Of a stretch of DNA of 64,000 nucleotides, positions 21,897 through 60,012 are shown piece by piece. The position numbers were made by a program, and so were the translations under genes. The DNA is taken from positions 1 through 64,000 of IMG/VR virus record IMGVR_UViG_3300004151_000006. One strand, 5' to 3'. The notes under the pieces are model-generated. The model was not told the origin of the DNA, did not search any database, and saw nothing but the letters and a program-made list of their open reading frames with translations. Numbering within the stretch: the stretch's first letter is position 1; each line of letters begins with the position of its first letter.

Positions 21897-22547
21897 CTAT
21901 TCCCTAGGCAAGTGCTCTCCATCCTCGGAGAGAACTTGGTGTGAAGTTGAACTACTGGGTGTGCCACTGATTGGATTGTTGGTTGATCCATTTGGTCGAG
22001 TTGATTTATTTGTATTCCTTAAACTACTTGTGGTATCACTACTCCCAAAGAAGAATCCCACAATAGCACTCAATATACCAAGTAAGAAACCAATAGCAGT
22101 ATCAGCAAATCGAATACTTTTTTCTGGGATCTCATAAAACGTAATCATAAACACATATCCAAAAACCAAGACAGTGATGATGAGTCCAAATAAAGGGGGG
22201 AAATATTTAAAGAATTTATTATCTTTATTAGATTCAATAAGTTTCATATAAGTTTCTCTAGCATGTTTAGTGTCTTCAGTAACTATTTTTTTATATTGAA
22301 CATAAAATTCACTAATAGTTGAGAAATTATCAAAAGCACACTTTCTTAATTGTTCAATGGTTTGATCGTCTAATGTAGCCAATACATCAGGATTGCTGAT
22401 ATCTATACCAATTTGTGTTTTAATGAGATTAGCCAATTCACGAATACCAGCATCATCCATGTTAGATAAAAACCCATATAGAAAATCAAGTTTGGTTGAT
22501 AAGACTGTATCACCAATCTTGTTGAGTAAGTTAGACATGGGGTACAC
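21897..22547 (-). CDS. holin-like two-TM protein
   Basis: two TM segments ending GFLLGILSAIVGFFFGSS. Confidence 0.55.
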   Translation of the reverse strand: MYPMSNLLNKIGDTVLSTKLDFLYGFLSNMDDAGIRELANLIKTQIGIDISNPDVLATLDDQTIEQLRKCAFDNFSTISEFYVQYKKIVTEDTKHARETYMKLIESNKDNKFFKYFPPLFGLIITVLVFGYVFMITFYEIPEKSIRFADTAIGFLLGILSAIVGFFFGSSDTTSSLRNTNKSTRPNGSTNNPISGTPSSSTSHQVLSEDGEHLPRE

Positions 22548-22610
22548 ACTCCTTTGATACTTTAGTATCTATAAGATGTAAAAAATAAAAAATACAAATA
22601 GTCAAATAAA

Positions 22611-22646
22611 CACCTACCCCACTCCAAGAGAGGAGTGGGGTAGGTG
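22611..22646. terminator. GC-rich hairpin (15-bp arms)
   Basis: cacctaccccactcc-aagaga-ggagtggggtaggtg, downstream of 22686..23537. Confidence 0.75.
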
Positions 22647-22685
22647 ATACATCCGAAGATGATTGACCTTGGCTTGCAGGTCTGG

Positions 22686-23537
22686 TTAGACCGGCAGATC
22701 CAGGATGGCATCCAGATCGGCGGCGCCGAGAGTGGCACAGACGACCTTGTGATCGTACATGATGGCATTAGCAGCCTGGACGTTGTCGTAGTCGGTGACG
22801 TCGGCGTTGGTCTCAACAGTGGACAGGCGAGCGATCTCGACCTTGGTCATCTTGCCGTAGGTGGCGCCATCCAGGACATCGTCCAGGGTATTGGCATTGT
22901 CGCCACGGAACTTGAAGTGATCCTGCAGCTGCAGGGTCCAGTTGACATCCAGCGTGCCGATCTCGGAGACCTTGTTCCAGGACATGGGCAGAGCACCGGA
23001 TCCATCCGGGTCATACCAGACATAGATCGCAGCGCCGGCGGTGACAGAGGTATCACCGGGAGTTTTCTCGCCGCCGCCGGTGATGGTGCCGTTGGTGGCA
23101 TCGACGACCAGGATCAGGGTCGAATGGAAGGAAGCATCCAGAGCCTGCAGGTCACCATAGGTCTCGACCACCTTGACGGTGTTGAGGATGAAGCCGGGCA
23201 GCTGATCATGACGGATCTTGCCGGTGGCGTCGGAGAGGATCATGGACTCGGGGATGTTCTGGCCGACCTTCAGAGAATAGGTCAGCCCGCCGTCGGCGGT
23301 GGTAAAGAGCTTGTCGAGCAGGACGCGGTATTCGGTAGGCAACGAAGCTTCGATGGCCCAGGGCAGCTGGGCGAAGGTCTTGGTGCCGTCGCCGACTTTG
23401 ATCCGACCAAGCGAGCTGTCACGGACGGCCAGACCAGCAGGGATGTTTTTGGTGTTATTGACCCAATTGGCCGAGGTATCGCTCGGCATCGGGGCCAACA
23501 GATTGGCGGTGTTGCGTTTGGTAGCGGAACCGGGCAT
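22686..23537 (-). CDS. virion fibre/decoration protein with Mtd-N/hyaluronidase-N-like domain
   Basis: GRIKVGDGTKTFAQLPW motif; AAGGAG RBS; codons strongly C/G-ending. Confidence 0.7.
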   Translation of the reverse strand: MPGSATKRNTANLLAPMPSDTSANWVNNTKNIPAGLAVRDSSLGRIKVGDGTKTFAQLPWAIEASLPTEYRVLLDKLFTTADGGLTYSLKVGQNIPESMILSDATGKIRHDQLPGFILNTVKVVETYGDLQALDASFHSTLILVVDATNGTITGGGEKTPGDTSVTAGAAIYVWYDPDGSGALPMSWNKVSEIGTLDVNWTLQLQDHFKFRGDNANTLDDVLDGATYGKMTKVEIARLSTVETNADVTDYDNVQAANAIMYDHKVVCATLGAADLDAILDLPV

Positions 23538-23658
23538 CGGATATTCTCCTTAATGCGTGCTTGTTGAATCAAATTTAGGAAAACCAAATACACTTCAGTA
23601 TAAAGGTCTCCTAGTGCCTATAAGATGTAAGCTTGGATCAACTGAAGCTTACAGAAAA

Positions 23659-23862
23659 TTAAAACAAAGATTTGATCATGGATGGTAGAATAACAAGACC
23701 CCTGAGTACACCTGCTACCACCACACATCCCATAGCCATGACTACTACATACGCTAAAAAGACCTTTAGGAACTTGATCTTTGACCTGCAACGAAAATCT
23801 GTCTGGAAATATTCCTTCTTGGTCTTTTCCAGCAATGGAGAATTGAAATTGATAACTGCCAC
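23659..23862 (-). CDS. small membrane protein
   Basis: AAGGAGG + GTG; C-terminal hydrophobic helix. Confidence 0.55.
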   Translation of the reverse strand: MAVINFNSPLLEKTKKEYFQTDFRCRSKIKFLKVFLAYVVVMAMGCVVVAGVLRGLVILPSMIKSLF

Positions 23863-23909
23863 GGTAGCCTCCTTTTTTGGATGAGTCTTAGAATCATTAA
23901 AGGTTTAAT

Positions 23910-25091
23910 ATGCTGACCAAGCATGCTATGTCTAGGCATGTGAAACCTTACATAGTACTTACTTGGGAGGACCTCTGTTTGATGGACGAAACACTACACA
24001 CACCTACAGTTACACAGGATATCTTAAACTTACGCTTTATTTCCGATGCTGCAGAAACGTATGTCTGTGATCAGGAGTACGTCTCAAAGTATGGCCAAGA
24101 TACAGTAAAAGAAGAAGACCTACTATTTGATCTATATGAAATAATCAAAAATGAATTAGTTGATCTGGGTATTGTTTATTGGGACACACAATATAATCCA
24201 TTAGAAGATTGGTATCAAGCACGTAGTCTTTATTATCTTAGAAAAGTATTTGATGAAGATGTATTGTTGATATTACTTAAACAAAATGATAGTGTAATAC
24301 CTGGTATTGAAACTATCATCTCTTCAGATGAAAGTGATGAAAGTGATATACATTTAGTATTAGAATTACTTAACAATACATTTATTGATCATCCTGATAT
24401 ATTGATGTGCATGGAATTTCAAGATAAGATCATCTCTACGGATAGATTCACTGAACATTTAAAAGCTATCATCTATACACATAAACATCTAGCTACCACC
24501 ACTATTGATGATCCTGAAATAGTGTTACCTTATATCAAACAAATTGAATTGGGCAGAGTGCGAGTAAAAGAAGCAGTAGAACGAATATTACTCAATCTTG
24601 ATGAGACTGGTAAAATCATGACCACTGATATAACAAATTGTGGAAGATCTAGTATTGATATGGAGCTACTTGATACTCTTCTTAGAAATTATGATTTGGA
24701 TAAACTTCAACCTAATGAGATTGGATATTATGCAGTTTTAGATAGACCTGATGAAAATATAGATAAGGTACAACTGGAATTTAAACAAAAATATATGGAT
24801 ATTCATCACAATAGAAGCCCACATCACATTGAGTATTGGAAATCACATGGAATATTAAACCTCACCAATACCAATATTCTAATGTTAATGGCACACATTT
24901 ATAATCCTTATTTAAATGGTGATGAATTTGTCACTGAATTTGCAAATATGAGAAAGATAGCTATCACTATATTCACTGAAGATCAGATTAAGATCTTAGA
25001 TACATATGGTCTGGTATTGATGGGTACTATGAGAGATCATGGTCAGGAGGATCAATATGGTCACATACCAGATCATTCCATCGTCTCATAA
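23910..25091 (+). CDS. hypothetical protein upstream of RNAP subunit
   Basis: 393-aa ORF; start uncertain. Confidence 0.75.
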   Translation: MLTKHAMSRHVKPYIVLTWEDLCLMDETLHTPTVTQDILNLRFISDAAETYVCDQEYVSKYGQDTVKEEDLLFDLYEIIKNELVDLGIVYWDTQYNPLEDWYQARSLYYLRKVFDEDVLLILLKQNDSVIPGIETIISSDESDESDIHLVLELLNNTFIDHPDILMCMEFQDKIISTDRFTEHLKAIIYTHKHLATTTIDDPEIVLPYIKQIELGRVRVKEAVERILLNLDETGKIMTTDITNCGRSSIDMELLDTLLRNYDLDKLQPNEIGYYAVLDRPDENIDKVQLEFKQKYMDIHHNRSPHHIEYWKSHGILNLTNTNILMLMAHIYNPYLNGDEFVTEFANMRKIAITIFTEDQIKILDTYGLVLMGTMRDHGQEDQYGHIPDHSIVS

Positions 25092-38211: not shown

Positions 38212-39009
38212 ATGCCAAATGGTATTTTAGTTTGTGATAAGTGTTTTACAGTCATCCACAGCAAATCGGACATAGCTAAACACAATGCCTGTTGTTTGGG
38301 TGAACTTGGGGAAATAGATGAACACCTCTGTGATGCGATGTTAGAACTGTGGAAAATGGGAATACAAACATTCTGGTGTTGTCAGGGACACCATTATGAT
38401 GATCACTTTTCTAGACCATATGTCGTTATGACTAAAGCAGTAATGCCCTTTGCAATTGAATTGAAAAAAGATGAAAAGTATAAAATGATAAAACTAAGAA
38501 GGAACTATTATAAATCCAATGAATTACTTATTGAGATCCCCTTAATAAGAGCATATCATTCACCATATCACATTTTAGAACTTATGTTGATTTTTGTAAG
38601 ATTTATTAATAACTTGGTGGTACTTATTAAAAATGCAGATACTTCCAAATTAAATAACCCAACACAAATCAAGTATAAATATAAAGGAACTTATGCCAAT
38701 ATCTGTTTTAAATGCTGGGGAGATGATACCCAATGGGTCATCTATGATTTTAAAGATTTTCCAACACAAGATGCATATAAAAAATGGTCTCCAATTAAAG
38801 TGTTCACAGAAGATAATAAATTATATATAGTAAGAAAAAACAGTACTAAAATATATAACCATGGAGAACAGATCACTAAAGAAGCTACATATGATTTACA
38901 TTTTAGCATTATTGAAGGTTTATGTTTTGCTAAAAAATCAAGAGTGCGACACAGAAATAGGGCTTTTAGAAAAAAGAATGCACTCATTCGTAGAGAAATA
39001 GAATGTTAA
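38212..39009 (+). CDS. hypothetical protein with Tyw3-like ID...T..CCxGH motif
   Basis: IDEHLCDAMLELWKMGIQTFWCCQGH; AGGAG before ATG 38212. Confidence 0.6.
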   Translation: MPNGILVCDKCFTVIHSKSDIAKHNACCLGELGEIDEHLCDAMLELWKMGIQTFWCCQGHHYDDHFSRPYVVMTKAVMPFAIELKKDEKYKMIKLRRNYYKSNELLIEIPLIRAYHSPYHILELMLIFVRFINNLVVLIKNADTSKLNNPTQIKYKYKGTYANICFKCWGDDTQWVIYDFKDFPTQDAYKKWSPIKVFTEDNKLYIVRKNSTKIYNHGEQITKEATYDLHFSIIEGLCFAKKSRVRHRNRAFRKKNALIRREIEC

Positions 39010-39629
39010 ATCAATATCAAAACATCAATACTGACTCTACTGAAATATTAGAAGAGAATGCTCTAATATTTAGAAAGGTATCTGAACCCTTTGGTGAACT
39101 TCACAACATGCATAATGGATTTCCACTTACGGTCATGGAGCACCGTATCAAATCTAGTGAAGCACTTTATCAGATGTTAAAATATCCACACCACAGTGAT
39201 GTACAACACAGTATCAACAATCAACCCCATGCATATGTAGCTAAGAGATATGCATATCACTATGATAGTCATAAAAGATCTGATTGGTTTGATGTTAGTG
39301 TACCTATTATGTATTGGGTAGTCAAACTCAAAGTACTCTTTTATTGGAAGATATTCTCACCCATTTATGTTCAGCATCCAAAAATTAATATTGTAGAATG
39401 GTCTAAGAAAGAAGAATTCTGGGGAGCTAAACTCAAACAAGGTATCTTTTATGGATCTAATGTATTGGGTAAAATACACATGTGTATCAGTGATGAAATA
39501 AATGAACTCTATCCACAAGTACAATCTTCTTCAAACAGTTTTATATATACTCTAGAACCTTTGAATATTCCGGACTTTAAATTATTCAATAAATTTATCC
39601 CACCAATAGATTTAGTATTAGAAAAATGA
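39003..39629 (+). CDS. NADAR (DUF1768/YbiA-like) family protein
   Basis: FGELHNM, SSEALYQ, RSDW, IVEWS..FWGA, GSNVLGKIHM. Confidence 0.88.
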   Translation: MLNQYQNINTDSTEILEENALIFRKVSEPFGELHNMHNGFPLTVMEHRIKSSEALYQMLKYPHHSDVQHSINNQPHAYVAKRYAYHYDSHKRSDWFDVSVPIMYWVVKLKVLFYWKIFSPIYVQHPKINIVEWSKKEEFWGAKLKQGIFYGSNVLGKIHMCISDEINELYPQVQSSSNSFIYTLEPLNIPDFKLFNKFIPPIDLVLEK

Positions 39630-41653: not shown

Positions 41654-41679
41654 AAGATCAGATCCTAAGATCTGATCTT
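41654..41679. terminator. hairpin
   Basis: aagatcagatc-ctaa-gatctgatctt then cttcttt. Confidence 0.55.
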
Positions 41680-41691
41680 CTTCTTTAATCA

Positions 41692-42181
41692 GTGGGCACT
41701 TTAGACTAGAGGTAATTCTCACTGCTCACCAATTGGGATCGTCAAATCGGAGATAATGACGACCTAGGCCAAATTGGCTGAATATGGGAGGCAAATATGC
41801 ATTGGCCGTAACTATCATGTCCGGCTCCTTTGGGTCGTGCCTATCTGGGACTCCCGGAAAGGTCATCGGCTACACAGTCTAAGGTAATATCAAAATATAT
41901 CCGGTGAGTAGCTGTGCGGTAATGACAGCGGCAGTCGTTGACATCGACGATATGATGTGGGTTTAGAGGAACCCTCGGGAATGGGTGGTGTGAACACCCT
42001 ACCACACCCTATTCAAACAATAGATCGAGACTGTGACTAAACCACGTACTGAATCAAAGGTGATGTGCACCACCAGAGAGAGACTCGTGGTAACCGGATG
42101 TGTCTTAGGTATCGTTTGTTTATGCACCTCTAACTTGCATTACAGGGCTGGGGCCGGATCATCAGATTTGTGCCTCAGCCC
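41692..42181 (+). ncRNA. candidate large structured non-coding RNA
   Basis: no credible ORF, elevated GC, more than 12 helices including long-range pairs with G-U wobbles; directly upstream of tRNAs. Confidence 0.6.
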
Positions 42182-42195
42182 ATCTTAATTTATGT

Positions 42196-42271
42196 TGGGG
42201 TATAGCTCAGTTGGTAGAGCCATCGGCTCATAACCGAAAGGTCACGTGTTCGACCCACGTTGCCCCAACCA
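42196..42271 (+). tRNA. tRNA with CAU anticodon (probably Ile2; Met not excluded)
   Basis: cloverleaf, loop CTCATAA, GTTCGA T-arm, encoded CCA; lacks the three G-C anticodon-stem pairs of initiator tRNA. Confidence 0.9.
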
Positions 42272-42275
42272 TTGT

Positions 42276-42352
42276 GGGACTGTAGCTCAGTTGGATAGAG
42301 CATCTGCCTTCTAAGCAGACAGTCAGAGGTTCGACTCCTCTCAGTCTCACCA
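42276..42352 (+). tRNA. tRNA-Arg(UCU)
   Basis: cloverleaf, tctgc-CTTCTAA-gcaga, GGTTCGACTCC, encoded CCA. Confidence 0.93.
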
Positions 42353-42362
42353 CCAAAATTTT

Positions 42363-42439
42363 CAAGGACATAGCTTAGTCGTAGAGCCCAGGTCTCACCA
42401 GCCTGGAGAGTTTGGTTCAATTCCAAATGTCCTTGGCCA
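42363..42439 (+). tRNA. aberrant tRNA-like gene (8-bp acceptor; nominal anticodon CAC)
   Basis: caaggaca/tgtccttg + G + CCA; D arm gctt/gagc; caggt-CTCACCA-gcctg; tttgg-TTCAATT-ccaaa. Confidence 0.65.
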
Positions 42440-42514
42440 AGATTATCTCTCTTATATCAGGAGAGTTGTGTAAGACATTCTGTGCATCACCATGAAGGGA
42501 CATGTGGCTGTACA

Positions 42515-42646
42515 GGGACATAACTTCATCGTACCTCAATATCCATCAAAAGTGATACCCATGCGATGATGCGGGAGGAACACGTAAAACACCCTCCATC
42601 CAAATACCTCGACAGTTGACAGGTGGTAACCGCTGAACAATGTCCC
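42515..42646 (+). ncRNA. candidate ~130-nt multibranch RNA
   Basis: gggacat/atgtccc closes helices catcgta/tgcgatg, gcgg/ccgc, ggagg/cctcc, acct/aggt. Confidence 0.4.
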
Positions 42647-42651
42647 ATAAA

Positions 42652-42681
42652 GGAGAGAGTGCATATAAATGCACTCTCTCC
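42652..42681 (+). terminator. hairpin ending the RNA locus
   Basis: ggagagagtgcat-ataa-atgcactctctcc, T-run about 11 nt later. Confidence 0.75.
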
Positions 42682-42729
42682 CGCCACCACACTTTATTTT
42701 TTTTTGTAAATATTATGAAGGAGTAAATT

Positions 42730-54038: not shown

Positions 54039-56828
54039 GTGGCAGATAGCGCCAAAATAGTACCCAGCGCATTTACACAATTAGCTGGAGTAATCGATGA
54101 AAAACCCCGTGTCACAAATATTAATAATAAAGAATTAAACAATACTCCAGTATCGAAATATAGTCATAATGAAATTCTCAGTGTAATCAGAAATACTTAT
54201 GTTAGTGATAAAGAAGTACCAAATCCGAATTTAGCCAATGCCGAAGGACTCATATCATACTTTCTACCGATACATGAACAAATTGGACAAGTACTTCTTG
54301 ATACTGAGAAAATGAAGAAGTTAGCACCTGAAATCAATCAAGCTAAACTCATTCGTATCTCTTCTATCATGTCACCCAATGATATGCAAGATGGTAAATT
54401 TATTTTTGACATAGACCAAATACCTGGACTCACAGAAGATGCTCGTAAAAAGATCACAGACCTGCTTAGTGAATTTTTTAATGAGACTGAAAAGTTAGCT
54501 AAGAAAGCAGCCAAATGGTCTGGTGATGCGCTCTATGGTCCAGGAGCTAGTCCAGTATTGTTACTCCCATCAAGTTATCAAAAAGCTATGCATGAAGATG
54601 GTAAACATATTATCGGTAATCGAACTGATGATAAAGTGATTGGGAATACTTCATTATCTGTTGAATCAATCAAATTTACAAAACAAGAATATATGAAGAA
54701 ATTAGAAAATACTTTTATCTACACTGATAACACTGTTGGTATTGAACATTGGGCACTTACTATTCAGAAAGATACTGATCATAAATCAAAATGGGTAGAT
54801 GACATCTATGATAATTTGCCCACCACTTATTTATTAGATAAAGAAAAAGATGAACTTCGTGTTGGTATTGAACAAATCACTGTAAATTTTATCAAACAAA
54901 TTGAAGCAGGTGATATTATTAAATTAACTGAAAATCCAGAGATCATCAAATTTGCTACTGAATATAGAAAAAATACAAGTAAACAATTGGAAAATAAATT
55001 ACAAAATCATTTTAACATGCAAATGTCATATAAACAAGAAGATCTAATTAGTTTAAATAAATATATTAATACTAAAGAAGTAGATGACACACATCCACTC
55101 ATGTTGGATATCCCAGCTGAATCTGTGATACCAATCTGTGTACCGAGTAATGAACGTGAACATCTCGGATATTTTATATTACTTGACGAATCAGGTCAAC
55201 CAATTAAGGCTGATGAAAGCAGAATCTCTAATTCTAATGGTTGGGGTGGTGGGCCACAAGCTGCCTTTCAAGCTATGTTCGGTAGTAGTGAACGTAATAT
55301 ATTTCAATCTCCCAATTTCAAAAACTATGAAGAGATGACAGTACGTAAAATCTTTAATGGCCTGTTAGATGAATATCTTAAATCCAAGCTACGTGGTATT
55401 GGACATGAAGATGTCACTATTGATAAAACCAATGCTATCATGACCACCATGCTGTATAGGTTACTTGAACATAAACGTACTCGTATTTTATTTATCCCTT
55501 CATTTTTGATGTCATATATTTGTTTTGATTATCGAAAAAATGGTACAGGTAAATCTTTATTAGAAGATATTCATTATCTTCTTTCATTACGTGTGACCTT
55601 TCAAGTAGCTGCACTTATGGGTATGGCTAAAGATGCAATCAATCATCGTACTTTAAATCTCACTTTTGCAAATCAAGAAACCAATCCTCGAGCACTCATG
55701 GATCAATTGGTCAATATGTTTGTTGAAAAAGAACGTATGCCATTTAGTTTAGATCCCACTGAAGTATCTCGAGGTATAGCTAGAAATGCTATCTCTGTAG
55801 CACCAAAAAACTTACCAGGATTAGATGAGTTTGGTATTGAACGTGTCAATGATGCTGGTGGTGGTGGCAATAAACCAGATACTGAATTGCTAGATACTAT
55901 CACTAATATGTTAGTCACGGCATTGGGTGTACCTTACAGTGCACTCAATCAATTGGCTGAACAAGAATATGCTAAATCTATCGTTACTACTAATTTATTT
56001 TATTCCAAACAAATCAGACAAGATCAGGATATCCTTTGCCTATTTGCTGAGCATCTTGTTAAACAATATATAAAATTTTCTCCTAAATTACAAACTAAAA
56101 TTCAAGCTATTATCAAAGAGTTTTTAAAAGATCCAGATGATACATCTGAAGAAGCTGAAAAGAAAAATGAAAAACGTGGTACAGTACCTTCTACCCAACA
56201 TGCTCCTGAACTAGAAAATGATGTGATCACCAAACTCAACATGATTACAAAGCTAGTCATTGATAGTATCAGACTTAAATTACCCACACCAAATATTGCT
56301 CAAGATAAAGCACAATATGCTGAAATTACAGAATATATAAATGCACTTGATCAGTTCCTTAATGTCAAATATGCCAATGAATTAGTACCTGCTGATAACA
56401 TGGAGGCTACTACTGCACTCAATGTAATCAAAGCTACTATTAAGAGTATTGCAATTGATGATTTCTTTAGTAAGGTTGGTGTAGTCAATACCATGGATCT
56501 TCCTTCCATCGAAGAATTTATTGCTAAACATGATGCCACTGATGTACTACAGATATTGATGAACTTTAATAAAGGACTCAAAGATGTAGCTACTAAATTT
56601 GGGAGTGCTGATCCAATGGGCATGGGTGGTAGCGATATGAGTATGATGGGAGATGACATGATGGGTGGTATGGGTGATGAAGGTATGATGGGAGATGAAC
56701 CACCTATGGATATGAATATGGATACTGGACCAGAGATGATGCCAGATGAAGTGCCCACATCCACTAAAGAAGAAAATAAAAACATGGATGGTACTTTTAA
56801 TATTCCTGAAGATAATAAGCCAGTGTAG
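54039..56828 (+). CDS. portal protein (phiKZ gp129-like)
   Basis: PEINQA..IRISSIMSP, IPAESVIP..P...HLGYFILLDESGQP, DYRKNGTGKSLLE; AGGAGG + GTG 54039. Confidence 0.75.
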   Translation: MADSAKIVPSAFTQLAGVIDEKPRVTNINNKELNNTPVSKYSHNEILSVIRNTYVSDKEVPNPNLANAEGLISYFLPIHEQIGQVLLDTEKMKKLAPEINQAKLIRISSIMSPNDMQDGKFIFDIDQIPGLTEDARKKITDLLSEFFNETEKLAKKAAKWSGDALYGPGASPVLLLPSSYQKAMHEDGKHIIGNRTDDKVIGNTSLSVESIKFTKQEYMKKLENTFIYTDNTVGIEHWALTIQKDTDHKSKWVDDIYDNLPTTYLLDKEKDELRVGIEQITVNFIKQIEAGDIIKLTENPEIIKFATEYRKNTSKQLENKLQNHFNMQMSYKQEDLISLNKYINTKEVDDTHPLMLDIPAESVIPICVPSNEREHLGYFILLDESGQPIKADESRISNSNGWGGGPQAAFQAMFGSSERNIFQSPNFKNYEEMTVRKIFNGLLDEYLKSKLRGIGHEDVTIDKTNAIMTTMLYRLLEHKRTRILFIPSFLMSYICFDYRKNGTGKSLLEDIHYLLSLRVTFQVAALMGMAKDAINHRTLNLTFANQETNPRALMDQLVNMFVEKERMPFSLDPTEVSRGIARNAISVAPKNLPGLDEFGIERVNDAGGGGNKPDTELLDTITNMLVTALGVPYSALNQLAEQEYAKSIVTTNLFYSKQIRQDQDILCLFAEHLVKQYIKFSPKLQTKIQAIIKEFLKDPDDTSEEAEKKNEKRGTVPSTQHAPELENDVITKLNMITKLVIDSIRLKLPTPNIAQDKAQYAEITEYINALDQFLNVKYANELVPADNMEATTALNVIKATIKSIAIDDFFSKVGVVNTMDLPSIEEFIAKHDATDVLQILMNFNKGLKDVATKFGSADPMGMGGSDMSMMGDDMMGGMGDEGMMGDEPPMDMNMDTGPEMMPDEVPTSTKEENKNMDGTFNIPEDNKPV

Positions 56829-56837
56829 TATGATCTC

Positions 56838-56867
56838 CTGGAGAGGGGCCCTATGGCCCCTCTCCAG
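56838..56867. terminator. GC-rich hairpin between convergent genes
   Basis: ctggagaggggcc-ctat-ggcccctctccag. Confidence 0.75.
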
Positions 56868-56892
56868 ATAGATCAATTAGATGTGATGTTGG

Positions 56893-57975
56893 TTAAACGA
56901 GAGTTCCACCAGTGGCTTCAGTCGTATCCGTAGCCACGGTGGTAGTACCACGATAAGACTCACCATCAGCAGCAGCCGGGGCACTCTCAGTCAAGAGCTG
57001 ACCAGGTCCCTGGTAGTACTGATTGGTGGGATTGATTCCCCGATAGCCCTGGAAGGCCGTAGCATTGCCAGGAGCAGACACGGTATCTGGATTGTATCCA
57101 CCACCGTTGACTTCATCGGAGATGCCGTAGTTCTTGATCACCGGCTGAATGGCTTCATCGAAGCCAGTCTTGCCGAGGATACCAGGCAGGGCCAGGTTGT
57201 AGTTGACCTGATGCATACGCAGCATGACAGCCACCTGGTAGGCCAGCTCACGAATGTTTTCGTTGTGCTGGACGATGCCGGTGTACTGGATAGTGCGTTC
57301 CTGCAAGTTAGTCGTGTTGATGACACGCTGCAACTGCAGGGGACCAATATCCGTCGGGAAGACGTTCGTGTAGAACGCCGCATCGATGATGCGATCCGGA
57401 AGCATGGTGGCATCGTACTGGATCGCCAGGAAGCTCATTGACCAAGCTGTCATGACCCAGGGCGGAATCTCACCGATGTCGGTGTTCATCGAGAGGGCCG
57501 AAGCATTGGTATCCGGATGTTGCATATCGAAGATCCACCGACGGTGCAGGTTCCAGCAGAGGTTGCCGGTCACTTCGGTGTATTCGATAGACGGTGAGAT
57601 CTGACCGCGAGTGCTGCGTGTCGGGATCTTGAGTGTCTGGCCATCATGGCCAATGGGAGTTTCAGCAGTCTCAACTGCATAGTTAAACTCAATACCAGTC
57701 ACAGACTTAGCATGAGTCTCGACCATGGACTTGAGCATCATCTGGAGATCAGGGATCCCATCCCACATGGAAGGGGTATGAAGCACCACAATGACTGCCG
57801 GAGTGAATGCCAACGGAGTGGCCGCATCCAACTTGGTATACTTTACACCAGTCCCAAGTTGACCACCCGTGAACAGGTTACCAACAGCTCCACGCTGTCC
57901 GATGCCAAGTCCGGTGATGTTACCGATCAGAGCATCCGTCATGGAGTTAGGCGCAGCAATAGGTTTACCGTTCAT
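56893..57975 (-). CDS. tail tube protein (phiKZ gp30-like)
   Basis: LKSMVETHAKSVTGI, PIGHDGQ, NVFP; downstream of sheath; GC3-rich. Confidence 0.78.
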   Translation of the reverse strand: MNGKPIAAPNSMTDALIGNITGLGIGQRGAVGNLFTGGQLGTGVKYTKLDAATPLAFTPAVIVVLHTPSMWDGIPDLQMMLKSMVETHAKSVTGIEFNYAVETAETPIGHDGQTLKIPTRSTRGQISPSIEYTEVTGNLCWNLHRRWIFDMQHPDTNASALSMNTDIGEIPPWVMTAWSMSFLAIQYDATMLPDRIIDAAFYTNVFPTDIGPLQLQRVINTTNLQERTIQYTGIVQHNENIRELAYQVAVMLRMHQVNYNLALPGILGKTGFDEAIQPVIKNYGISDEVNGGGYNPDTVSAPGNATAFQGYRGINPTNQYYQGPGQLLTESAPAAADGESYRGTTTVATDTTEATGGTLV

Positions 57976-57978
57976 AGA

Positions 57979-60012
57979 TTAAGCCTCCTCGGGGGTGTAG
58001 CCACTGCGCCAACAAACGATATCCACATCCCAAATGCGGTTCGGGGCATGGCCAATCAGATTGACAGTACCGTGGGTAGTATAACCGATCTTTTGTTCTT
58101 CATCAGTACGATAGAAATTCACTGAGACACCATATGTACCATTGAGCATATGCTGCATATCTTTCAGCGTAGTACGCTTGGCAGCAGCAGCCAGGATCTC
58201 AAACGGGAGTTCCTTACCGGCATGGACCGCCCAGTTGTACCGCACGATGTGCTTCGTATAGACCACGGCATCAGTGAAGATAGCCGAAGACAGAACCGAA
58301 GTGTCGTAACGATAAACAGTGCGGATATCCGGCCAGTGTACCCGATGACGATCGTAGAACTGGACATAGTTGAGACCATAGTCCCAGCTATCCTGCTTAT
58401 GATCGACCTTGCAGGGGAACCAGTTCATCTTGGTGACCTTGAAGAGCTTGACCTGCGAAAGCGGGAGACCCTTCGGCATGCCATCCAAGTAGTTCTTGGA
58501 CTGGTGATATGCACGCTTGGTCATGGCTTCCAACGTCAACGGAAGGAAACCCTCATACCTGGTATTGTCTACCAGATACCCAGCTTGCTGGTAGATCTCC
58601 ACCCTGCAGCATTCCGTACCATGGATGATAGATTCCGGCTGCAAGAGAGCTGCACTGTGTACAGCCATACCAACAGACATATCTTCATCCTTGGTATTCA
58701 TTCGATCCCGCTGACAATCCTGGGTAGACAAGATCACCTTGATGTCATCCCGCACAGCCAGGAAGCTCAAGAAAGCTTTCTTAGTTTCCAGCAAGACACC
58801 CGTATCCCAGACATGGGTAATGGGGAATCGAGCAGAATCAGAGATTTCCGGGAACAGATCATCTTTCAACCATTGACGAGTCAACGTTTCAATTGAAGTA
58901 TCAGTAATATCACCATCAGACCCACCAGACAAATAGATAATATAATTCTGATTAAGGACAACACTATTGGGATCAGTAGCATCCATTTCGATTTCCACAT
59001 GATCAAGATACGTACCATCAGCTTTACGACCAGTGAACAGATCGATCATATAGGGATTAGTTTCAGTCACATTAGGTTCAACATTAAGAACCGCAGTAGC
59101 TACAGCTTTATAATAGTTATCATAAGTGTGTACAGCAAAAGGAAGTTTAGAGAGCTGCATAGTCGAAGACCAGAACAAATCATCCAGTACATAGGTGAGT
59201 GCTAAATTCTTATCTAAAGTCTTATCAATAGCATCAGGACGAATACTGGCACGCACAAATGAATCACCATATGAAGAACGTACAGGAGAAACAGTATCCT
59301 GACCATACGTCTTTTTAACTACATAATACTGAAACTCCAAAGCACCAATACGGGATACCTGAGCTGCATCCACATTGATCGGATCATAATGAATCTTATA
59401 TCCAAGTTCATCACCATATTCACCAGGATACAAAGCACGATGTGCCAACATTGGGAAAGTCTGAGTGGATACACCAGCTTCTTCTACAGTGACAGGTCTC
59501 AATGAATTAAGTGTAACATCCTGTGCAATGATATCTTTAGTCCATTTCAATTTATATCCAGGTTCCTTAATGATATCACCAGAAGTAGCATCAGTGAGCG
59601 GAATCTTATTTCCATCAGTATCTAAAACAAAGCCACCGAATTCATCTTTCTTATACTGGGTAATTTGTGCAGGAGTGATTTTCAATTTCAGTGCAGAAGA
59701 AGAATACTTAGCAGTATCTGGAGCCAGTCGGACATAGAAACAGCCCTGACGTTCAAAAAGATGCTGCATATAAACAGATTCACGAGAATGATATTTTGAA
59801 TACTTGTCAAACGTACCTTCACCATACATCCATTTTGCAGAATCATAGGTCCCATTCCACGTAGGAAATCCAATGGGGCCTTGCATAGCACGCCCAAAAA
59901 ACACGGGACGATGTAATGGGAGTTCTTCCCGATACAGCGGCGTGTAAATGGACTTGTCCAACACGTTCATTTGCGCATGCGGAAACGTGTTTAAGATAGA
60001 CGTCGTACCCAT
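57979..60012 (-). CDS. tail sheath protein (phiKZ gp29-like)
   Basis: PLHRPVF..A..GP, YGEGTFD, YLSGGSDG, WDTG, PESIIHGT..CR, RTVY.YDTSVL; GAAGGAG before ATG 60012. Confidence 0.85.
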   Translation of the reverse strand: MGTTSILNTFPHAQMNVLDKSIYTPLYREELPLHRPVFFGRAMQGPIGFPTWNGTYDSAKWMYGEGTFDKYSKYHSRESVYMQHLFERQGCFYVRLAPDTAKYSSSALKLKITPAQITQYKKDEFGGFVLDTDGNKIPLTDATSGDIIKEPGYKLKWTKDIIAQDVTLNSLRPVTVEEAGVSTQTFPMLAHRALYPGEYGDELGYKIHYDPINVDAAQVSRIGALEFQYYVVKKTYGQDTVSPVRSSYGDSFVRASIRPDAIDKTLDKNLALTYVLDDLFWSSTMQLSKLPFAVHTYDNYYKAVATAVLNVEPNVTETNPYMIDLFTGRKADGTYLDHVEIEMDATDPNSVVLNQNYIIYLSGGSDGDITDTSIETLTRQWLKDDLFPEISDSARFPITHVWDTGVLLETKKAFLSFLAVRDDIKVILSTQDCQRDRMNTKDEDMSVGMAVHSAALLQPESIIHGTECCRVEIYQQAGYLVDNTRYEGFLPLTLEAMTKRAYHQSKNYLDGMPKGLPLSQVKLFKVTKMNWFPCKVDHKQDSWDYGLNYVQFYDRHRVHWPDIRTVYRYDTSVLSSAIFTDAVVYTKHIVRYNWAVHAGKELPFEILAAAAKRTTLKDMQHMLNGTYGVSVNFYRTDEEQKIGYTTHGTVNLIGHAPNRIWDVDIVCWRSGYTPEEA

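Follow-up and report, generated by a model that had tools for sequence, protein, structure and literature searches.

The locus encodes three tRNAs between two structured RNAs

We analysed a 64,000-nucleotide stretch of DNA (the window) that opens the uncultured viral contig IMGVR_UViG_3300004151_000006, which is 286.7 kb long. The genome is that of a low-GC (~33%), phiKZ-like jumbo phage, with genes for a phiKZ-type tail sheath and tail tube, a vertex protein, a divergent family B DNA polymerase and a type II topoisomerase. In the window, ARAGORN calls three tRNA genes and no others, in a single plus-strand cluster. The first is a canonical tRNA(CAT), Met or Ile2 (42196-42271; Rfam, 61.4 bits), and the second a canonical tRNA-Arg(TCT) (42276-42352; Rfam, 71.2 bits). 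The third gene starts 10 nt after tRNA-Arg(TCT), at 42363-42439, and is called tRNA-Val(CAC). A preliminary description had singled it out as an unusual tRNA-like gene and proposed a tRNA-gene search as a check, and the ARAGORN call agrees with it.

The cluster sits in an operon of ~1 kb without convincing ORFs, which consists of a structured RNA, tRNA-CAT, tRNA-Arg-UCU, the third tRNA, another structured RNA and a terminator. Its left edge is a terminator-like plus-strand hairpin (41654-41679) that ends the preceding protein gene, and its right edge is a hairpin with a T-run at ~42652-42705. The upstream structured RNA (41900-42105, plus strand) is ~200 nt long, is closed by a long helix and is probably on the same transcript as the tRNAs. 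When the window was aligned with two related loci described below (L024 and L027), RNAalifold predicted 58 pairs in this RNA, 17 of them with changes on both sides. The downstream structured RNA (42440-42705, plus strand) is ~265 nt long and begins 1 nt after the CCA of the third tRNA; with a further relative, L025, added to the alignment, 46 pairs were predicted, 13 with both-sided changes. Its conserved blocks include GAGTTGTGTAAG, ACCATGAAGGGACATGTGG and ATACCTCGACAG, and its 3' end is a 12-13 bp hairpin followed by CCACCA and a T-run (42693-42705). The motif GTGGTAACCG is common to the upstream and downstream RNAs (repeat D3). No Rfam family matches either RNA, and neither has a match among the INPHARED phages. 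The locus as a whole is a conserved ~1 kb tRNA/ncRNA operon.

Candidate long-range pairings in the operon were rejected. Matches between tRNA loops and the flanking RNAs are only 5-6 nt long, involve GGUGAG or GGUGG segments that already lie in conserved helices, and are at chance level. An inverted repeat between 41750-41771 and 42428-42449 is 73% complementary and not conserved, and was also judged to be chance.

Elsewhere in the window, a NADAR-domain protein of the ADP-ribose-processing family is encoded ~2.5 kb upstream of the tRNA operon (39003-39629, plus strand). Its gene adjoins topoisomerase and DUF7566 genes, as it also does in relatives (L021 and a contig from SRR27069942). A Pfam scan of the other window ORFs found no tRNA-processing, repair or synthetase genes. 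Two islands are GC-rich, at 0.44-0.46 vs ~0.33 elsewhere. The one at 56001-60000 spans the tail tube and tail sheath genes. In the one at 22001-24000, long ORFs on opposite strands overlap almost fully (22644-23567, plus; 22686-23537, minus), and the coding strand is ambiguous.

The third tRNA folds as a cloverleaf with irregular loops and an irregular 3' end

The Rfam tRNA model (RF00005) matches the third tRNA at 42364-42435 with 50.2 bits, against a gathering score of 29 (E = 8.6e-8 for the 64-kb window), and aligns it as an ordinary 7/5 cloverleaf over model positions 1-71 of 71. The cloverleaf is also the minimum free energy structure, with a z-score of -3.1, and 0/200 shuffles fold equally well. 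The match is far beyond chance.

The gene spans 77 nt, including C-1 and an encoded GCCA tail. The 5' acceptor strand (42363-42370) consists of C-1 (42363) and AAGGACA and can pair with 42428-42435. The D arm (42373-42387) reads GCTT / AGTCGTA / GAGC and contains a U13.G22 wobble. The anticodon arm (42388-42406) comprises C26, CAGGT, the loop CTCACCA, GCCTG and G44, with the anticodon CAC at 42396-42398 and C37 at 42399. A variable region of 4-5 nt (GAGAG) leads to the T arm (42411-42427), TTTGG / TTCAATT / CCAAA, which has a perfect 5-bp stem and a canonical T loop (T54 T55 C56 R57 A58) with the G53:C61 pair. The 3' acceptor strand (42428-42439) is TGTCCTT, followed by G73 (42435), an extra G (42436) and CCA (42437-42439), which leaves the CCA one base off the canonical register. 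The G discriminator, encoded CCA, perfect T stem and short variable loop had all been noted in the preliminary description, and each was found where it had been placed.

The same description claimed a perfect 8-bp acceptor stem, caaggaca/tgtccttg. The sequence is as claimed: 42363-42371 and 42427-42435 are 100% complementary in a repeat search, and ARAGORN draws an 8-bp stem with a G discriminator and CCA. However, the eighth pair is only potential. The 7-bp stem is AAGGACA (42364-42370) with TGTCCTT (42428-42434), to which C42363:G42435 is a possible addition. Positions -1 and 73 can also pair (U:A) in both canonical neighbour tRNAs, which have A73 and CCA in register. The 8-bp reading rests solely on the one extra G before CCA, and therefore a single-base insertion is enough to produce it. 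We take the 8/5 geometry to be a by-product of this extra G rather than a Sec-like design.

The loops depart from the canonical pattern in part. The D loop, AGUCGUA, has one G where canonical tRNAs have G18 G19, as first reported. The anticodon arm allows the two readings already proposed, a 7-nt loop CUCACCA or a CCAGG/CCTGG stem with a 9-nt loop, as well as a third with a 6-bp stem (C26:G44 to U31.G39). Canonical elongators combine U33 with a purine at 37; here U33 is present and position 37 is C. In E. coli, A35 and C36 are the main identity elements for ValRS. The anticodon CAC supplies both, whereas the A73 of tRNA-Val is replaced by G42435, or by G42436 in the 8-bp reading.

A 9-mer, GTCTCACCA, occurs twice in the window (repeat D6): at 42344-42352, where it forms the 3' end of tRNA-Arg (acceptor strand, A73 and CCA), and at 42392-42400, in the anticodon stem-loop of the third tRNA. 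We also considered a tRNA-His (GUG) on the minus strand and rejected it; there is no T loop, the end pair is C-1:G73 and not G-1:C73, and no tool calls it.

Relatives and codon use point to a valine slot

We collected four related loci (L025, L024, L027 and L032) from Logan/NCBI assemblies by means of homologues of neighbouring genes. The third tRNA sequence is identical in at least three independent assemblies, including L029 and L023, and L023 is 100% identical over the cluster. Searches of viral and metagenome contigs guided by the DUF7566-neighbour protein returned the same phage only.

In L024 and L027 (64% identical), the position directly before the downstream RNA is occupied by a canonical, unrelated tRNA-Val(UAC) with A73-CCA. 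This gene is a non-homologous replacement of the window-type gene. The preliminary description had named as contrary evidence a canonical tRNA in relatives that differs from the third tRNA by random substitutions; what lies in the slot is a different gene, not a randomly substituted copy of the same one. Since both occupants are of the valine type, the amino-acid family of the slot is kept across the replacement.

Both loci also carry, fused to the new tRNA-Val(UAC), a 17-nt 5' remnant whose best match is the 5' region of tRNA-Arg of the window type. In L027 (2266-3001), a 5' fragment of the window-type CAT tRNA is followed by an HNH_3 endonuclease gene and then by a different tRNA-Met(CAT). 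These remnants and new tRNAs indicate that the cluster is a replacement hotspot. A MazE-like antitoxin ORF is inserted between tRNAs in L024 (1291-1610).

In the more distant L032, the CAT tRNA agrees with the window CAT tRNA at 7/7 anticodon-loop positions, and there is no Val tRNA nearby. At 660-1000, L032 contains a class-II (Leu-like) tRNA gene, GCCCGAGTGGTGGAA...CTCGGGTACCA, split by a group I intron (Rfam Intron_gpI, 71.9 bits at 692-934) and adjoining an HNH_3 gene; ARAGORN misses the interrupted tRNA.

GUG accounts for 20-24% of Val codons in the window genes, while other G-ending four-box codons average 5%, so that GUG is used 4-5x as much. The codons of the neighbouring tRNAs are also well used (AUA, 20% of Ile; AGA, 36% of Arg). 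Relatives with a Val tRNA in the slot share the GUA/GUG preference, whereas L032 prefers GUU at 63%. Codon use thus fits a phage valine tRNA for GUR codons, as indirect evidence. The preliminary description had overlooked this valine context.

Some of the irregular features have precedents among tRNA genes

The D arm TAGCTTAGTCGTAGAGC is identical in a canonical tRNA-Thr(UGU) gene found on 12 viral contigs. A normal tRNA can therefore have a GG-less D loop, and the feature, though correctly described, is not unique to this gene. This tRNA-Thr(UGU), with its single-G D loop (AGTCGTA), is near-identical on 12 unrelated viral contigs (L006-L017), which include GVMAG bins (giant-virus MAGs). Its recurrence may reflect a common organellar or cellular source, or contamination.

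A pyrimidine at position 37 is very rare. The pattern GAGC-N6-CTCAC[R or Y]-...-GGTTCRANTCC was run against IMG/VR. Its purine-37 version matched 32 loci, 19 of which ARAGORN calls tRNA-Val(CAC). With a pyrimidine it matched two loci only, the third tRNA and one aberrant gene with a 6-nt loop. Among comparable phage tRNA-Val(CAC) genes, meaning those that match this one pattern, C37 is found in 1/20. The CUCACCA version gave five matches among 185,579 species of bacteria and archaea, at one genome per species; three of the five are tRNA-like and degenerate-looking. These three genes, in an uncultured bacterium (L035, 633-673), Kitasatospora (L037, 2201-2277) and a Pseudorhodoferax MAG (L038, 1790-1864), all have imperfect arms, and the Pseudorhodoferax gene lies within a tRNA array. 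Position 73 is A in nearly all of the 19 phage tRNA-Val(CAC) genes; one of them, L067, has G73 together with an in-register CCA.

Beyond the contig of the window, the exact anticodon arm occurs in IMG/VR only within coding sequence of two high-GC phages (L002 and L003), which is attributed to chance, and the looser pattern AGAGC-N6-CTCACCA-N15-TTCAATT occurs there in the window's contig only. The downstream motif ACCATGANGNGACATGTGG gave a single chance match in IMG/VR, within a gene (L026). BLAST against INPHARED phages returned no match to the third tRNA, and the 24-kb neighbourhood was matched via tRNA-Arg only.

Paired changes preserve the stems while the anticodon loop and the 3' end change

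The closest diverged relative, L025 (neighbour protein 73% identical), has a 70-nt cloverleaf at the same place, with the same upstream spacer and a conserved downstream RNA. It reads GGAGACT CA GCTC AATGGTC GAGC G CGGGA CCCACACCA TCCCG AGG TCCG TTCAATT CGGA AGTCTCC A TCTCCA, and neither ARAGORN nor Rfam recognises it. We compared 21 pairs, including -1:73, between this counterpart and the window gene. Eleven are identical, one is changed on one side, nine are changed on both sides and none is broken. In a simulation of random substitution, 0/300,000 runs kept all pairs (P < 1e-5). With nine double changes and no broken pair, the stems are under selection. The earlier argument that intact stems combined with broken loop invariants speak against random decay is therefore upheld by comparison with a relative. 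The third tRNA gene is certainly a tRNA-derived, structure-selected element of valine ancestry.

These data bear directly on whether the gene could be a recently inactivated tRNA-Val pseudogene, without remaining function, in a replacement hotspot. Stem mismatches are the sign of a decaying pseudogene, and all 21/21 pairs are intact in both the window and L025 despite differences at 19/42 stem bases. For the window copy alone, a rough estimate is that ~5 random hits would spare all pairs with a chance of ~0.05. The identical sequence also recurs in several independent samples. On the other hand, C37, the CCA shift and G73 could each be a single-event lesion, the few cellular CUCACCA-loop genes look degenerate, and the cluster turns over fast, as seen in the CAT remnant, HNH gene and new tRNA-Met of L027 and in the tRNA-Arg remnant of L024/L027. 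Taken together, we consider a pseudogene improbable.

The T loop is identical in L025 and the window, and the 3' part of the anticodon loop, CACCA, is common to both. L025 differs in having a 9-nt anticodon loop without U33, a 3-nt variable loop, a 4-bp T stem and a CCA three bases off register. The anticodon loop of this lineage is therefore not conserved, in contrast to that of the CAT tRNA, which stays the same at 7/7 positions as far out as L032. The L025 counterpart also bears on the idea of a specialised tRNA, whether one with a true 13-bp (8/5) branch, one with a 9-nt anticodon loop for recoding, or a decoy that presents ...CACCA to host tRNA-targeting nucleases. The window sequence does permit 8 bp + G + CCA and a 9-nt loop, and in L025 the 9-nt loop is obligatory and again contains CACCA. 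Phage tRNAs with an 8-bp acceptor stem (8/4) exist (PMC5389517), and phage tRNAs are known to counter tRNA-cleaving defences (PMC10264068, PMC11464382). However, the L025 tail (A-TCTCCA) does not back a conserved design of 8 bp + N + CCA, and the third tRNA lacks a long variable arm, a UCA anticodon and a Sec-type D arm. The expanded anticodon proposed in the preliminary description is not supported, as the 9-nt loop of L025 lacks U33 and the window loop closes to 7 nt. The decoy role proposed there is likewise unsupported; we found no nuclease or defence link in the window. Presence of GTCTCACCA in both the tRNA-Arg 3' end and the third tRNA would suit a decoy or other special role, but the repeat is expected by chance at ~2%, was noticed post hoc and is not conserved in L025. 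We regard a specialised tRNA of any of these kinds as very improbable.

The 3' end and the position of the gene raise a stronger alternative, namely a non-decoding, tRNA-shaped element derived from tRNA-Val that serves as punctuation. RNase P and 3' nucleases would act on it to separate tRNA-Arg from the downstream RNA, while its loop, position 73 and CCA register drift. An in-register CCA is present at 9/9 canonical tRNA 3' ends in these loci and absent from both the window gene and its L025 counterpart. The first hairpin of the downstream RNA follows position 73 of a tRNA or tRNA-like element at a distance of 10-11 nt in all four relatives. The nine double changes that keep the stems coincide with an anticodon loop that goes from 7 to 9 nt, loss of U33, a shorter variable loop and a T stem with one pair fewer, and in the window copy the deviations cluster at charging and decoding positions (37, 73 and the tail) rather than in the stems or T loop. 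There are also precedents in the t-elements of plant mitochondria (PMC1920247) and in the pseudo-tRNA tRNA-Other of Bacillus cereus (PMC3399842). Against this, the acceptor/T-arm stack is all that RNase P requires, and the gene has kept its D and anticodon stems as well. The window copy retains A35 and C36 and is able to close a normal 7-nt loop that contains U33; the slot in L024/L027 holds a fully canonical tRNA-Val; phage GUG use fits decoding; and the lineage is known from two sequences only. We consider such a processing element less likely than not. It nonetheless ranks nearly equal to the valine-tRNA reading. The non-decoding mimic or processing signal of the preliminary description thus survives as a serious rival, on account of the loop length change and the CCA register, and not as the reading we prefer.

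A broader form of this idea would make the window gene and its L025 counterpart a small jumbo-phage family of non-decoding tRNA-shaped RNAs, derived from tRNA-Val and kept by compensatory evolution. Its members would share an acceptor end that is lengthened or displaced (8/5 in the window, 8/4 in L025), with a conserved CACCA motif in an enlarged anticodon loop, and could act as a processing module for the flanking RNAs, as a partner of them, or as bait for ACCA-end enzymes. We consider the existence of such a family rather unlikely.

The third tRNA is tentatively read as an irregular valine tRNA

Our preferred reading, held at slightly less than an even chance, is that the third tRNA is a diverged tRNA-Val(CAC) of a phiKZ-like jumbo phage that may still work, though sloppily and possibly weakly. 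It is favoured because the gene matches the full tRNA model, has U33 and A35/C36, lies in a valine slot in a phage that uses GUG, and has a precedent for each of its oddities. The ARAGORN and Rfam calls, the canonical T loop and the availability of a 7-nt loop also count for it. Counted against it are the rare C37, G73, the out-of-register CCA and the non-conserved anticodon loop in the lineage. In T4, several tRNA genes have no encoded CCA, and host enzymes mature their products nevertheless. Together with the D arm in tRNA-Thr and G73 in L067, such T4 genes without a usable encoded CCA favour a sloppy decoder.

If the third tRNA is a valine tRNA, its maturation and use can be outlined as follows. 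It would be co-transcribed with its neighbours. RNase P cleavage at its 5' side would also free the trailer of tRNA-Arg, and cutting or trimming at its 3' side would also free the 5' end of the downstream RNA. The host 3' pathway would set the mature form, either a normal 7/5 tRNA with G73, from which the trailer is removed and to which CCA is re-added, or an 8-bp stem that keeps the encoded G-CCA. Host ValRS could then charge the tRNA via A35 and C36, and GUG would be read. C37, G73 and the absent G19 would probably make charging and decoding inefficient. The 8-bp form, if made, should bind EF-Tu poorly, as reported for tRNA-Sec (PMC7609411).

Interest in phage tRNAs has revived, both as tools of counter-defence and as codon-adaptation markers. 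A phage tRNA poised between a decoding and a structural role would show the recruitment of tRNA genes to other uses. Were the third tRNA no more than a sloppy tRNA-Val, it would count as a routine annotation, albeit one of a functional tRNA that naturally has C37. Should the 8-bp form truly arise, the gene would yield a class-I tRNA whose acceptor branch has 13 bp, a length known so far, to our knowledge, only for tRNA-Sec. The two flanking structured RNAs may be a more rewarding target than the tRNA itself.

Comparison with known systems

The operon resembles the tRNA clusters of lytic phages such as T4 in its tight tRNA spacing, in anticodons suited to A/T-rich or phage-preferred codons, in small structured RNAs that are probably within the same transcript and in homing endonuclease genes in or near the cluster in relatives. 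The T4 tRNA region also produces co-transcribed stable small RNAs. Unlike the members of such clusters, the third tRNA has C37, G73, no G19 and a CCA shifted by one base, and no known family matches its flanking RNAs.

Irregular tRNAs with an 8-bp acceptor stem do occur in phage tRNA polycistrons, as (8/4) tRNA-His and tRNA-Ser (Mukai et al. 2017, PMC5389517), and the L025 counterpart can be drawn as 8/4 with its 4-bp T stem. In the (8/4) tRNAs and allo-tRNAs the branch totals 12 bp (8/4 or 9/3), and allo-tRNAs add to this a Sec-like D arm and a long variable arm (PMC5389517), whereas the window branch is 7/5 or 8/5 because the T stem is a perfect 5 bp, and the D arm of the third tRNA is ordinary and its variable loop short. 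The comparison with allo-tRNAs suggested in the preliminary description thus sets the third tRNA outside that group, with its 5-bp T stem and no long arm.

The analogy with bacterial tRNA-Sec (8/5, 13-bp branch; PMC7609411) comes down to the 8/5 potential, that is, a possible 8-bp acceptor with a 5-bp T stem, beside which only a possible 6-bp anticodon stem can be set. The sequence allows 8/5 and Rfam aligns 7/5; the eighth pair depends on the RNase P cut site. We rejected identity with tRNA-Sec, as the third tRNA combines a 4-5 nt variable region and a CAC anticodon with a D arm of 4-bp stem and 7-nt loop, vs the long arm, UCA anticodon and 6-bp D stem with 4-nt loop of tRNA-Sec. Rfam also prefers its general tRNA model for the third tRNA.

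Phage tRNAs that escape anticodon nucleases (PMC10264068, PMC11555353, PMC11464382) likewise have an anticodon loop that departs from the cellular norm, but, so far as is reported, they still decode canonically and have a purine at 37. The tRNA-Other of Bacillus cereus (PMC3399842) and t-elements (PMC1920247) share with the third tRNA a cloverleaf that is kept while charging and decoding features are degraded, and a position in which tRNA-processing enzymes could set the ends of a neighbouring RNA. The window copy is far closer to a normal tRNA than these are.

The preliminary observation holds, and the interpretation given with it is partly right. The most fitting label for the gene is a valine-family phage tRNA of irregular form. 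Its nearest described counterparts are the irregular tRNAs of phage polycistrons (PMC5389517) and, should it prove to be a punctuation element, the pseudo-tRNAs and processing elements of Bacillus cereus and plant mitochondria (PMC3399842, PMC1920247).
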